A stretch of 64,000 nucleotides of DNA from contig NW_027192207.1 in assembly GCF_041956535.1 (NCBI RefSeq), positions 64,810 to 128,809 of the forward strand, read 5' to 3'. Shown here one piece after another: positions 6,673-13,835 of this stretch. Under the pieces are notes generated by a model. It saw only the letters and a program-made list of their open reading frames with translations, ran no database searches and was not told the DNA's origin. Position numbers and translations under genes: made by a program. This DNA is from Calcarisporiella thermophila CBS 279.70 (taxonomy: Eukaryota; Fungi; Calcarisporiellomycota). Numbering within the stretch: position 1 is the first letter of the stretch; every line of letters begins with the position of its first letter.

Positions 6673-7796
6673 ATGAGCTCTGTGAATAATCACAATAGCA
6701 CATCGGAGTCAGCGAAGATTAACGTTTACGCTGTTCAAGATCAATACAACTGGTTACACGTATCATCCATAGTATGTGCTGTTGCCATGATGGCAATAGT
6801 CGGTTATCTTCGGTGCAAGCAGCCTGCCATCACGAATACAATATCACTCAAACTTTCTCTCTGGATCGGACTTGTCGACGTATTATCTCGAGTAACGATT
6901 CATTTGCAATCTCCTCCGAGATGTGATGTTATAAACCCCTTGTTTTCTGACTTTGTAGGTAAATTTTTTGATCCGTGTTAATCCTTCTGTAATGAACATT
7001 ATCGTCAATTCTATACCTTGGTCTCCTCGCCTCTTCGCATACACGAGCTATTGTTTTACGATGTGGTTTGCTTTTCTTAGCACCACAATTGCATTCGATC
7101 TACACCTATCCTTTCTCTGCCTCCGCAAGAATTTAAAATCGATTCAGCGATTGTACTGTCCCGTTGCAACACTGGCCAGCTTTTCGCTAGCACTTCCCTT
7201 CCCTTTCGTCGGTGATATATATTGGGATACAGAAATTGTAAAAAAAAATATTCAGATGCTGGCGCTTCTCCTCGGAATATTGATGAAGCAATTACATTTT
7301 TTATTTGTAGGAAAATATTTACATATCTTTGGATCTCGCACCGGCCCTTGCGCTTGAAATTTTATGTTTTAATCTCTGGATGATATCCGCAATTTTGTAC
7401 TCTTTTACCATCATTATTTTAGTAATCTTTCATGTTTACAAATCCTTGCGCGTTATCCGCGAAAACGTCGGGTCTATGTCCACGGAGGTGCAAGACAGAG
7501 AGCGACGATTTACTTACTCAGTATTGCGTGTTCTTCTCTATCCCACCGTACTTGTTATATGCTGTCCGGCGAATATCATACTCGATTGGATTTTCTTTCT
7601 GAAGCAAGAGCAAACATCTTTGAGCATAGTAATAATGCGTGCCGATTCAATAACAACTGGATTGCAAGGGGTCCTAAATTTTCTAGTATTCCTTCTCAAC
7701 CCTGCTGTCGTAAGGGCCCTCTCGCGTTACAAGATTTTCAGTGTCTTGAGAAGCAACGCATCATCCGCTATCGACATAGAAGACCGACCACAATAA
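6673..7796 (+). CDS. 7-TM GPCR-like receptor (cAMP-receptor/Git3-like); exons 6673-6891, 6959-7237, 7311-7796
   Basis: Two phase-0 GT-AG introns join three ORF-track fragments. About seven hydrophobic segments, with RVLLYP (TM6) and GLQGVLNFLVFLLNP (TM7) motifs. Confidence 0.72.
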
Positions 7797-9014: not shown

Positions 9015-9116
9015 CGCGATTGATTCAAATCGCGTTCCTCGCGTCAAAAATTTTTATTATATATATACTCTTTTGCAATCTCCCTTTATATATACCTAAA
9101 ATCAATTCTAACGCGT
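9015..9116. promoter_or_regulatory. Cluster of CGCG / ACGCGT (MCB- or E2F-like) elements upstream of the SAP-Bir1-helix gene
   Basis: CGCG at 9015, 9031 and 9040 and ACGCGT at 9111-9116, within about 100 bp of otherwise AT-rich DNA. Confidence 0.4.
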
Positions 9117-9218: not shown

Positions 9219-11757
9219 ATGGCAGATTCCTCGGTATGTATTTTATTAGAATCGCACTGCTGTTTCCCTAACGTGTTCATTGCTTTTTTCTTTATAAAAG
9301 CAACTCATCAATGAGGTTATTCCTTTTATGCTTGCGACCCAACTTAAACAAGCCATTCGAATAATCAATGACAAGCTTGGGGCAAATATAAAACTCACAG
9401 GAAAAAAAGAATCGCTTATAATTCGCGTAGCGCAATACCTACAGGCGGTCAAAACTAATGAAGCGGAATTTGCACAATGCAGGGAAGCAATATTCCTGGT
9501 GTCTGATAGGGTATATCCTGACTAATTTTTCATTATTTAGCGAGTTTTATTGATGTTTTACTTTCTCTCGAATGAATAGGCAGAGTCAATTATAGATGAT
9601 ACGGCCTCTACAACAAGTAAGCGCTCAGCTCGGCTTCGCTCGCGAAAACAAGATACTGATACCGAGAGCATGAAAGATGAGGTGGGTAGAATTGTATCTT
9701 AGTGATATATTAATATGCACTTATGAATTGTGTTCCCAATAGACTGATTCAATAATGTCAGAATCAGTTGCGGGTGATATTTATTCAAGTAATAAACCTA
9801 CGACACGGGGTCGTGGGCGAAAAAATGCTAAAAAACAAACCGCGGTGGATGCAGAAAGTTTAATTGACGAGGTATAGAGTAGTCAATAAAGTGATTAGAC
9901 ACTATTTGATTATTTATTTTTGGTCGCTTATTTTCTAGACTGAATCGGTAATGACGGAGACCGCTATAGATGACAGTGCTTCAACCACAGGCCGAGCAAC
10001 CCGTGCGCGTTCGAGAAAAAAGGTCCCAGCGAAAAAAATGCAAGGAGTAGAGACTGAAAGTGTAGCCGATGAGGTTAGCGCCCTATTCTGCAGAAGGGTA
10101 GTTAAAGAAGAATGTTAACCCTATTGTTATTTCCATTGATACTCAGTATGAATCTCTTGTTGATGAGATCCCTCCTATTACGAAGAAGCGAGCCACTCGT
10201 TCTCGTGGGCGAAAACATCTGGATGATACCGAGAGTATTGCAGATGTACGTGATTGCCTTTATCCTAGAAATGTCTTTGTAGAGTTTTTATAATATGTAA
10301 CTCTCTTCCTTTCTTAGAATGAGTCTGTTGCCGATGAGGTGGCTTCAATATCTAACAAACGGACTACGCGAGCACGTGAGCGAAAGAATGCTTCAGCAGC
10401 AGAAAAATATGAGACTATGGACACTGATAGTGTTGACGAGGTATATACTCATAGCGTCGGAATAATGATCAAAAGTAGCTTTAGGTTAATTTTTATGTTA
10501 TTACCTTCAAGACCGCGTCGGTAATGACGACTGATATTACATCTGTACCAAATAAGCGTCCTCCAAGAACTCGAAAGCGAAGGCAGGAGGAAGAAGAAGT
10601 GAAACCAGATAATCCACCCGTTAATGAAATAGACGAGGTCAGTATTATTTCCCGGGATCTCTATGTATTTTTGTATAGTCCTAATTATTTTATATACTAT
10701 ATAAATAGATATGGGAAGAAGTCAAACCACTACGAAAAACACATGCCCGGACATACAAGGGACGTAAACGAGTTAAGAAGGACGAGGAGCTAGAATCAAT
10801 AGTGGAAGAGGTGTGGTATACTTATCATTTTTAAAACCAGCGCTTATTTAAACTTTTAAATCTGAATATTGGACACAGAGCGTAGCGGATGATGAATCAA
10901 TTGTCCCCCCGGAAGACGTCAAATCACCTAAACATCGTTCCCGCACAGGGCGTGCTGTTGCTACTGCAGAGCGGAGAGGAAAAACACGCGCAAAGAAGGC
11001 TCCATCATCTAAAAACGAATCTGCGACAGCAGAGGAGAAAGTCGATACAATAGAAGATGACCTGGTATCCGTTGCCGCGTCTGAGGATGTACAAAGTGTA
11101 GCGTCTGCTGCTAGTCGACCGCGGAGGGAGGGTCGAACAAGAAAAGAACGAGCACCGAAAATCGCTACGATAGCAGAGGAGTCAGAAACTCTGAAAGATG
11201 AAATAGAATCAATTGCACCATCGGAGAAGGATTTGCCAGTCACTGCCCCAGAGTCCGCAACTGGAAAAAGTAGGACAAATCGGGGAGGTGGCAGAGGTAA
11301 GAAGATAGCACAACCTAAAATCGCGGCTATTGCAGAAGAAGACCTGAACAGAACGGAGGAGGACAAAGAAGTCGAAGAAAGATTTAATCAAGTCGAAGTG
11401 AATGGGGTCAAGAAGGGTCAGTTAACACTTTCTGCGGGTGAAACACCCTTGAAACCATCGAAAACCACAACGCAAACAACAACGCCGCTCCCTTCTGCTC
11501 GTCTCGAGGAAAGATCACAGCAAAACAACGATGGGTACGATCCAAATCTCGCTAATTTCTCGCCCGAACTCGTGAGACTACCCATTCCCGTCGTGCTCTC
11601 TTCAGAGGAATCAAAACTGACTGTGGAGCAGTATTATCGCCAAAGATTGGAAAAACAAGTGGAGCGTTTGCGCGAGTTGGGAGACCAGATAGTGGTGCAT
11701 TTCAGAGAAGAGAGTGAAAAGCTCCGAAATGCAATCCTACAGATTCCCACGATTTAA
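9219..11757 (+). CDS. SAP-domain protein with exon-encoded repeats and a Bir1/Survivin-like C-terminal helix (about 635 aa, 10 exons)
   Basis: Exons 9219-9233, 9301-9498 (or 9510), 9580-9681, 9743-9871, 9939-10073, 10147-10245, 10318-10440, 10512-10637, 10709-10810, 10879-11757. All introns are GT-AG and phase 0 and the spliced frame is open. N-term QLKQAIRII...LTGKKESLIIRV; C-term LSSEESKLTVEQYYRQRLEKQVERLRELGDQIVVHFREESEKLRNAILQIPTI. Confidence 0.8.
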
Positions 11758-12062: not shown

Positions 12063-12111
12063 GCCGTGTGCGTGCCAATTTTTTTCAAAATTTTAGCTCT
12101 TGACACATTCA

Positions 12112-13383
12112 ATGTCCATTACACTTGGCCTCGAACGCATAGCAACCCTCTTGAAAGTGCTTGGGAATCCACACCTTCGCTTGCAGGTTATTCATGTTGC
12201 CGGCACCAATGGTAAGGGTTCAGTCTGCGCATACATTGATAATATCTTGCGGCGGGCTGGTTATCGAGTCGGCCGTTTCAATTCTCCGCACCTCCTCGAA
12301 GCACGCGATTCCATTCGTATTAATGGTGAGGCCCTTGATCGAGTCGCCTATCAAAATTTGCACGATGAGATAGCCGATGCATGCAGGCGTGCATCTCTCG
12401 ACGCAAGTCCCTTTGAGCGTTTGGCGGCAGCTGCGTTTGCTTGCTTCGAGCGCCGACAAGTAGAGGTTGCAGTAGTGGAAGTTGGAATGGGAGGAAGGCT
12501 AGACGCAACCAATGTCTTTCCTATGCCCTTACTAAGCGTTATCACTTCTATTGCCATGGATCACTCCGCATTTCTTGGTGGGACAATCTCTGCTATTGCG
12601 CGTGAGAAAGCAGGCATCATGCGACATAATGGGATCGTCGTCATTGCACCGCAGCGCGAAGAAAATGCAAGAATGGTGCTAGAAGAATGTGCAAGAGAAT
12701 TCGAGTGTCAAAAATATATGGTGCAGCCTGCAGTGTCTATAGGACGAGATGGATGGGCGGAAACAACTGTATTGGGAGGCAAGAAGCTTAGCTATCCTCT
12801 CACGCTACACGGAAAGTTTCAGCTGGAGAATACAGCTACGGCGGTAGTTGCCCTCGATTGCCTCCGTCGAACGCATGCATCCGTTTTCGGGCGAATAACC
12901 GATGAACATATCGTAGATGGATTACGAACAACGCGGTGGCCTGGCCGATTGGATTGGGTGTGTAGTGATAAATTCGGGAAAGTCCTCGTCGATGGAGCGC
13001 ATAACCCAGCTGCTGCAATGGCTCTGCGCGAGTTTGTGGACCAAGAGCTTGTGCGTATGGGTAAAAAGGGCGGAGTAAAATGGATCGTAGGAGCAACCCA
13101 AGGAAAGGATGTTAATGAACTATTACAGCTTCTTGTTCGTGAAGGGGATTCACTCTGCGCGGTTGGGTTTTCACAACCGGAGGGAATGCCCTGGATTCAG
13201 TGCGTAAGCCCAGAAGATATTACACGGTCAGCGCCAGCGGGATCACGGGTTAATTCAGCAGCGTCGCTCGAGGAAGCCCTTGCCACTGAAGCTAAGGAAG
13301 ATGATAGCATGCTTGTGCTCTGTGGCTCCCTCTATCTTGTTTCTGATTTTTATCGTCTTGTTGGTCTAGACAATCAATTATGA
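12112..13383 (+). CDS. FOL3: Dihydrofolate synthase / folylpolyglutamate synthase (FolC family), intronless
   Basis: HVAGTNGKGS P-loop, SPHL, VEVGMGGRLDATNV, WPGRL, DGAHNP, CGSLYLV; first ATG at 12112. Confidence 0.9.
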   Translation: MSITLGLERIATLLKVLGNPHLRLQVIHVAGTNGKGSVCAYIDNILRRAGYRVGRFNSPHLLEARDSIRINGEALDRVAYQNLHDEIADACRRASLDASPFERLAAAAFACFERRQVEVAVVEVGMGGRLDATNVFPMPLLSVITSIAMDHSAFLGGTISAIAREKAGIMRHNGIVVIAPQREENARMVLEECAREFECQKYMVQPAVSIGRDGWAETTVLGGKKLSYPLTLHGKFQLENTATAVVALDCLRRTHASVFGRITDEHIVDGLRTTRWPGRLDWVCSDKFGKVLVDGAHNPAAAMALREFVDQELVRMGKKGGVKWIVGATQGKDVNELLQLLVREGDSLCAVGFSQPEGMPWIQCVSPEDITRSAPAGSRVNSAASLEEALATEAKEDDSMLVLCGSLYLVSDFYRLVGLDNQL

Positions 13384-13467
13384 AGTTGCGTGCAATTGCA
13401 AGCATGTATATTTATTAAAAATACAGGATATATTAATATCAAGATGAATTGATGAGGATTGAGATGA

Positions 13468-13835
13468 TTAGCCCTTGAACTGTTGAAGAACTCTCTGGTA
13501 GTAAAAGAATCATATAAAATTAGCGCCTCTTTTAATACAACATACGAAGCTAAGTGTGCTTACATCGAGAGCAGTATTAATATGATTTGCTCTTATCACG
13601 TTCTCTTTAGACTGGGATGCATCTATGCTCGCCTCTGTTGCTAAGCGTTTCAGAAAAAGAACATAGTCAAGGTAGATCTATAATGGAGAAAGTAGATCAG
13701 AAAAAAAAATAACGCGAAATGTAAAAGATTTACGGTGTAAGCTACCATAACATCTGCATTTTTACTTAGCTGCGACTTTGGCTGATGAGCCTTTATGATT
13801 TTACGGAGAGTTGAACGTGGATAGAGTCGCGTCAT
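13468..13835 (-). CDS. Histone-fold kinetochore protein CENP-W/Wip1-like (76 aa); exons 13746-13835, 13564-13677, 13468-13494
   Basis: Spliced MTRLYPRSTLRKIIKAHQPKSQLSKNADVM-IYLDYVLFLKRLATEAS...IRANHINTALD-RVLQQFKG*, matching the CENP-W pattern (PR.TL++I+K, +YL+Y+LF++RL, VL..F+G). Confidence 0.85.

Follow-up and report, generated by a model that had tools for sequence, protein, structure and literature searches.

A gene of Calcarisporiella thermophila, located at 9219-11757 (+) of the window (the whole stretch of 64,000 nucleotides that was analysed), encodes a protein of 639 amino acids in which a Siz/PIAS-type SAP module at the N-terminus is joined to a Bir1/Survivin-type helix at the C-terminus. 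Judged from its sequence, this protein appears to be a real and apparently undescribed form of the Survivin family. Survivin is a subunit that assists in positioning Aurora B, a cell-division kinase, on chromosomes. Such a fusion had been proposed in the original prediction, and both domain identifications as well as their joining were supported. Inspection of splice sites gave a model of ten exons with no internal stops, and the features of the gene are as follows.

9030-9116 (+), three WCGCGW (MCB/E2F-like) motifs upstream of the start, at 9030, 9039 and 9111
9219-9233 (+), exon 1, five codons
9301-9510 (+), exon 2, amino acids 6-75, Siz/PIAS-type SAP module with four helices predicted
9580-9681 (+), exon 3
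9743-9871 (+), exon 4
9939-10073 (+), exon 5
10147-10245 (+), exon 6
10318-10440 (+), exon 7
10512-10637 (+), exon 8
10709-10810 (+), exon 9
9580-10810 (+), exons 3-9 together, amino acids 76-347, seven symmetric phase-0 exons with one repeat each
10879-11757 (+), exon 10, charged linker followed by the Bir1-type helix
10879-11595 (+), first part of exon 10, amino acids 348-586, low-complexity charged linker with four S/T-P sites
11596-11757 (+), Bir1/Survivin-type C-terminal helix (amino acids 587-639) and stop codon

All nine introns have GT-AG ends, are 61-73 nt long with 25-38% GC, and lie in phase 0. The model agrees at every residue with VTP21DRAFT_3255 of C. thermophila, the sole member of its own 90% cluster, and a search of the last 69 residues against 1.84 billion representatives gave one real match, which was again this protein. 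The N- and C-terminal peptides quoted in the original prediction are both contained in the product, which extends three residues beyond the quoted end. The predicted lack of BIR, SP-RING and PINIT domains was borne out, as the product has one Cys, no CxxC and no Pfam match for any of the three. About 0.18 WCGCGW motifs are expected per 205 nt, giving a Poisson P of about 8e-4 for a motif that was picked post hoc, and the cluster is possibly a cell-cycle promoter. The next gene downstream (12100-13383, +) is intronless and encodes a dihydrofolate synthetase of the FolC/Fol3 type with Mur ligase domains. It is followed, two genes downstream of the fusion, by a three-exon kinetochore gene for a CENP-W-like histone-fold protein (13450-13835, -; Pfam CENP-W, E 0.058 on the first frame). 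A gene upstream (6900-7796, +) is GPCR-like with seven transmembrane segments and weak Pfam matches.

Searches with the C-terminal helix as a single sequence found no relative besides VTP21DRAFT_3255 itself, and Pfam gave no match for the helix or the whole protein. Because direct searches gave no relatives, profiles were made from fungal Bir1 genes that had been chosen by their BIR sequence, with the helix ignored in the selection. They were gathered by scanning metagenomes for a BIR motif and by a protein search on the BIR region. Pezizomycotina, other ascomycetes, Taphrina, Rhizoctonia and Dimargaris are represented, and a Pfam BIR is present in those checked. The profiles consisted of the last 56-58 residues of the Bir1 proteins, the query always being excluded. 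Against them the 60-residue tail of the query scored 28.1, 28.3 and 35.8 bits, with at most 11.5 bits among 5000 shuffles and about 0 for the reversed tail. In the full protein the helix domain scored 28.7 bits at residues 586-637, compared with 17.0 for the best of 177,635 PDB sequences, and HHalign of the helix against Bir1 tails gave P=95.7% and E=1e-8 over 54 columns. These scores agree with the original identification of the C-terminus as a Bir1-type helix. Among 7428 six-frame stretches of the genome's own DNA that were examined, this tail was the only significant match of the helix profile (E 5e-8), and the next had E 3.8.

When single clades were left out of the profile, the query scored like the members left out for Dimargaris (33.6 bits, the members 35.5-36.9), for Taphrina (34.5 bits, the members 34.3) and for the yeast-like group. 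It did better than the Rhizoctonia members (29.7 bits, the members 14-17) and worse than those of Pezizomycotina (22.2 bits, the members 31.5-54.1). In its model (pLDDT 91) the tail has a 39-residue helix preceded by a short helix and a turn. Like that of fungal Bir1, it lies at the extreme C-terminus and follows a long charged linker. Some conserved columns deviate from the consensus, with a Cys changed to Gly and two Ala changed to Leu. Since the Survivin/BORI family is defined by this helix, which is conserved over about 47 residues (Komaki et al. 2022, PMC9680938), the protein belongs to the family at the level of sequence, the comparison being with fungal Bir1 tails and not with the published HMM.

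The N-terminus was identified as a SAP module transitively, because the direct match is weak and the homologous exon of a Siz gene matches Pfam SAP. Exon 2 itself matched only SAP_new25 with E 0.12 and was absent from the PF02037 listing of the genome scan. Within the genome it has a single relative (E 4e-9), exon 2 of a Siz/PIAS gene on contig C19, with 27 of 69 residues identical (39%) and no gaps, and that exon matches Pfam SAP with E 1.8e-4, just under the curated cut-off. The profile match expected in the original prediction was thus weak when sought directly and supported when sought through the Siz exon, and by this homology the N-terminus is of the Siz/PIAS type. In the C19 gene (G000:C19, about 71.0-74.1 kb) the SAP exon lies upstream of PINIT fragments and an SP-RING, which identifies it as a Siz/PIAS SUMO ligase. 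Both genes begin with a five-codon exon followed by a phase-0 intron, and their second introns are placed within one base of each other (exon 2 of 210 nt in the query and 209 nt in the Siz/PIAS gene). The Siz/PIAS gene is one of two such SP-RING genes in tandem at about 66.5-74.1 kb of C19, the upstream of which has a far more divergent SAP-like exon. Neither exon 2 nor the Siz exon was linked to solved SAP domains by PDB sequence searches. The exon 2 model has four helices at low confidence (pLDDT 56), and fold searches with it did not retrieve solved SAP domains. Atlas feature neighbours of exon 2 included HeH/SAP entries at 0.80-0.83, which is below 0.9 and serves as a lead only.

The SAP domain of yeast Siz1 binds dsDNA, and the triple change G55A/K57A/L60A abolishes binding (PMC2518684). 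The query carries G39, K41 and L44 (9400-9417) in the same G-x-K-x-x-L spacing, which is a match of motif spacing and not of an alignment to Siz1. Identity between the query and Siz SAP exons is 0.55, 0.59 and 0.30 at the three codon positions, and 4 of 13 four-fold sites are identical. These values point to constraint on the protein sequence of the SAP exon relative to Siz. With third positions near saturation and first and second positions still similar, the duplication is old and the module has been retained as protein. Because SAP is standard in Siz/PIAS proteins and missing from the other Bir1 proteins examined, we infer that it was copied from the Siz to the Survivin gene and not in the reverse direction.

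The region between the two domains is made up of the exon repeats and the linker of exon 10. Each of the seven repeats is 33-45 amino acids long, with an Arg/Lys-rich core flanked by acidic stretches and a disordered composition. They match each other by pairwise BLASTP with E values down to 2e-9 (without composition correction), and their similarity at the DNA level is nearly gone. A profile of the repeats matched neither Bir1 linkers nor exon 10. The linker is 39% charged. Readings of the repeats as SIM or AT-hook elements were rejected, since no proper motif supported them. As a conjecture, the repeats may contribute electrostatic contacts with DNA or nucleosomes.

The protein had been described as a paralog, implying a canonical Bir1 elsewhere, and this part of the original prediction is probably wrong. 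No BIR was found in the genome by Pfam PF00653, by four BIR protein queries or by a motif pattern, and none was found within the window. Given that no BIR-bearing Bir1 was found, the query is more likely to be the only Survivin than a paralog, and we consider it highly probable that VTP21DRAFT_3255 is the working and only Survivin of this fungus. The sole BIR-motif match in the genome was due to chance, as it does not match the BIR profile and is not preceded by a CxxC. Partners are encoded in the genome: INCENP with an IN-box and a plausible N-terminal helix (by eye), its N-terminus lying on the minus strand of G000:C36 at about 37.06-37.23 kb, Borealin with its N-helix (E 9e-11; G000:C13, about 517.2 kb), and a gene with a Bub1/Mad3 domain. 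A genome search for shugoshin, which was imperfect and from which no absence is claimed, did not find it, and one motif match proved not to be shugoshin.

The phosphorylation mark H3T3ph is written by Haspin and read by BIR. Haspin was not found in the genome either by profile, where the best score was 20 bits and belonged to ordinary kinases, or by three motif patterns. Wherever the motif was readable, the candidates from the profile search were ordinary HRDxK/DFG kinases (12 of 13), and the matches to the Haspin motifs were unrelated proteins. The absence of Haspin would be notable in itself, and it is likely from these searches that BIR and Haspin are both gone from the C. thermophila genome.

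In a published tree, C. thermophila is sister to the sampled Mucorales (PMC11393059 supplement). BIR-bearing Bir1 is present in both Dikarya and Zoopagomycota, so the BIR-less state is a derived one. A copy of Siz exons 1-2 would have replaced the ancestral BIR-coding 5' end of the gene, and Haspin, the writer of the mark, would have been lost. Searches by name gave no Mucoromycota Bir1 to compare it with, literature searches for Haspin or BIR in Mucoromycota were blank, and a paper on the Mucor centromere does not cover the chromosomal passenger complex (CPC). Database searches found no second protein with SAP and helix, which places the fusion in one species so far. In the annotation of two Dimargaris proteins (P0017 and P0018), a Ran GTPase is combined with two BIR domains and the tail of a Bir1. 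These are probably merged gene models, and they were used for BIR and tail only. A metagenome contig (L022:50-1195, -) encodes a compact Survivin of about 300 amino acids with two BIR domains and a short, divergent C-terminal helix.

Four topologies of Survivin/BORI proteins have been described, namely BIR with helix in Fungi and Metazoa, FHA with helix in two domain orders, and helix only (PMC9680938). The combination of SAP with helix falls outside these four, as had been expected, and literature searches, incomplete in coverage, found no description of it. Like fungal Bir1, the query has the helix in register at the extreme C-terminus, a long, charged, low-complexity and disordered linker, and INCENP and Borealin encoded in the same genome. 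It differs from these proteins, which have two BIR domains, in its N-terminal SAP, in a linker containing seven one-repeat exons and in lacking BIR; without BIR it should not read H3T3ph. Plant BORI1/2 and the FHA Survivin-like proteins of stramenopiles and haptists also carry a lineage-specific accessory chromatin-binding domain on the helix, but their domains read a phospho-mark and joined a helix-only ancestor (PMC9680938), whereas the query apparently lost BIR and gained a DNA-binding fold from a resident gene. With the helix-only forms of Amoebozoa, Rhodophyta, Discoba, Cryptista as well as Metamonada it shares the missing phosphate-binding domain; those proteins are short and have no other domain, in contrast to a 639-residue protein with a SAP module found within Fungi. 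The N-terminal SAP, the five-codon first exon and the G-x-K-x-x-L motif are held in common with Siz/PIAS ligases as represented by the C19 gene and yeast Siz1, but the product lacks PINIT and SP-RING and is therefore not a Siz-type ligase.

The best reading of these data, which we regard as on balance probable, would be a Survivin orthologue that lost the reading of H3T3ph and gained a Siz-derived SAP tether. The C-terminal helix would form a bundle with helices at the N-termini of INCENP and Borealin, and the SAP module, held on a flexible arm of about 500 residues with seven basic repeats, would bind dsDNA without need of a phospho-mark. This binding would strengthen the grip of the CPC on chromatin, so that the SAP tether would stand in for the one formed by BIR and H3T3ph. 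In the human CPC the BIR-H3T3ph tether works beside an anchor of Borealin on the nucleosome acidic patch, to which Borealin binds also when alone (PMC12420818). Because a Siz-type SAP binds ordinary DNA without sequence specificity, focusing at the centromere would require another input, for which Borealin bound to nucleosomes, Bub1/shugoshin, and INCENP positioned at the inner kinetochore are candidates. That SAP serves as the chromatin tether of Survivin has, in our estimation, somewhat better than an even chance, and the recruitment of Aurora B through direct binding of SAP to DNA, as originally proposed, is plausible. More tentatively, and with a little less than even confidence, the whole Haspin-H3T3ph-BIR route may have been dropped and the only CPC of this fungus may be tethered to chromatin by a DNA-binding SAP derived from a SUMO ligase. 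This would be a fifth Survivin topology and the first with an accessory domain other than a phospho-reader.

The gene model could have merged a SAP-only gene, giving 79 amino acids if intron 2 is retained, with a separate downstream gene for the helix, as unspliced exon 2 runs into a stop at 9523-9525 and the splicing of VTP21DRAFT_3255 is based on sequence and public annotation. This is very improbable, since the annotation is identical and its pipeline takes transcriptomes when available, and since exon 10 has no in-frame Met and all gaps are of intron size with canonical ends, leaving no room for a promoter. For the latter reasons the simplest reading would be that exons 1-10 belong to one transcript, and even a downstream start would yield a BIR-less Survivin. 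Similarly, the helix is short, is only 15-25% identical to single Bir1 tails, and gave uninformative fold searches when modelled alone, so it might be an unrelated coiled coil resembling Bir1 by chance, in a SAP chromatin protein outside the CPC. The margin of 11.7 bits over the best of the PDB decoys, many of which are coiled coils, its correct terminal position, and a genome that has the partners yet no other Survivin candidate make this the least probable of the alternatives. A canonical BIR-bearing Bir1, along with Haspin, could also have been missed, in which case the query would be a paralog in an alternative CPC or a competitor for INCENP and Borealin. The assembly is 454-based with N gaps that could hide a gene, as could break-up by introns; the BIR and Haspin searches were run without a positive control genome, and the exon-by-exon search with its loose first look loses divergent targets, a Dimargaris tail query having missed this very helix. 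Still, conservation of BIR is strong, even partial domains scoring 50-61 bits, and all three kinds of BIR search were blank, whereas the same tool detected both exon pieces of the related and comparable zf-C3HC domain, which an intron interrupts. The assembly is 97.4% BUSCO-complete with just 1.7% missing (PMC11393059 supplement), and the oversight would have to affect two independent genes, so that this explanation is improbable, if less so than the previous two.

A weightier alternative accepts the protein as the sole Survivin and a CPC subunit but denies that SAP targets the complex to mitotic chromatin. SAP might then serve to retain the protein in the nucleus, to stabilise it or to make a protein contact, or might mainly have come with the promoter and start exon, and the protein would behave like a helix-only Survivin placed by Borealin and shugoshin. 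In budding yeast, Bir1 can lose its BIR region and is still tolerated. Several supergroups have helix-only Survivins, and in plants the binding of H3T3ph is accessory (PMC9680938). The unaided binding of Borealin to the acidic patch (PMC12420818) and the additional control of nuclear retention and protein level by the SAP of yeast Siz1 (PMC2518684) point the same way. Against it, the SAP exon is of old origin, is held under constraint as protein, retains the DNA-binding residues and occupies the position held by BIR or FHA in other lineages, and we consider this alternative unlikely, though clearly less so than the others. The reading of SAP as a chromatin tether is preferred.

According to published work, Survivin-type proteins acquired BIR or FHA, both of them phosphate-binding domains, on at least three occasions, which has been read as convergence on H3T3ph (PMC9680938). 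C. thermophila appears to have gone the opposite way, with BIR lost, Haspin apparently lost and a DNA-binding module fused instead. The case is a clear one of exon shuffling, having donor and recipient in one genome, and it indicates that searches based on BIR overlook a Survivin even inside Fungi. The pieces are small, could be swapped into yeast Bir1, and come from a thermophile already used in structural work (Hsp104). The fungus may thus provide a natural test of the minimal needs of the CPC for finding chromatin.
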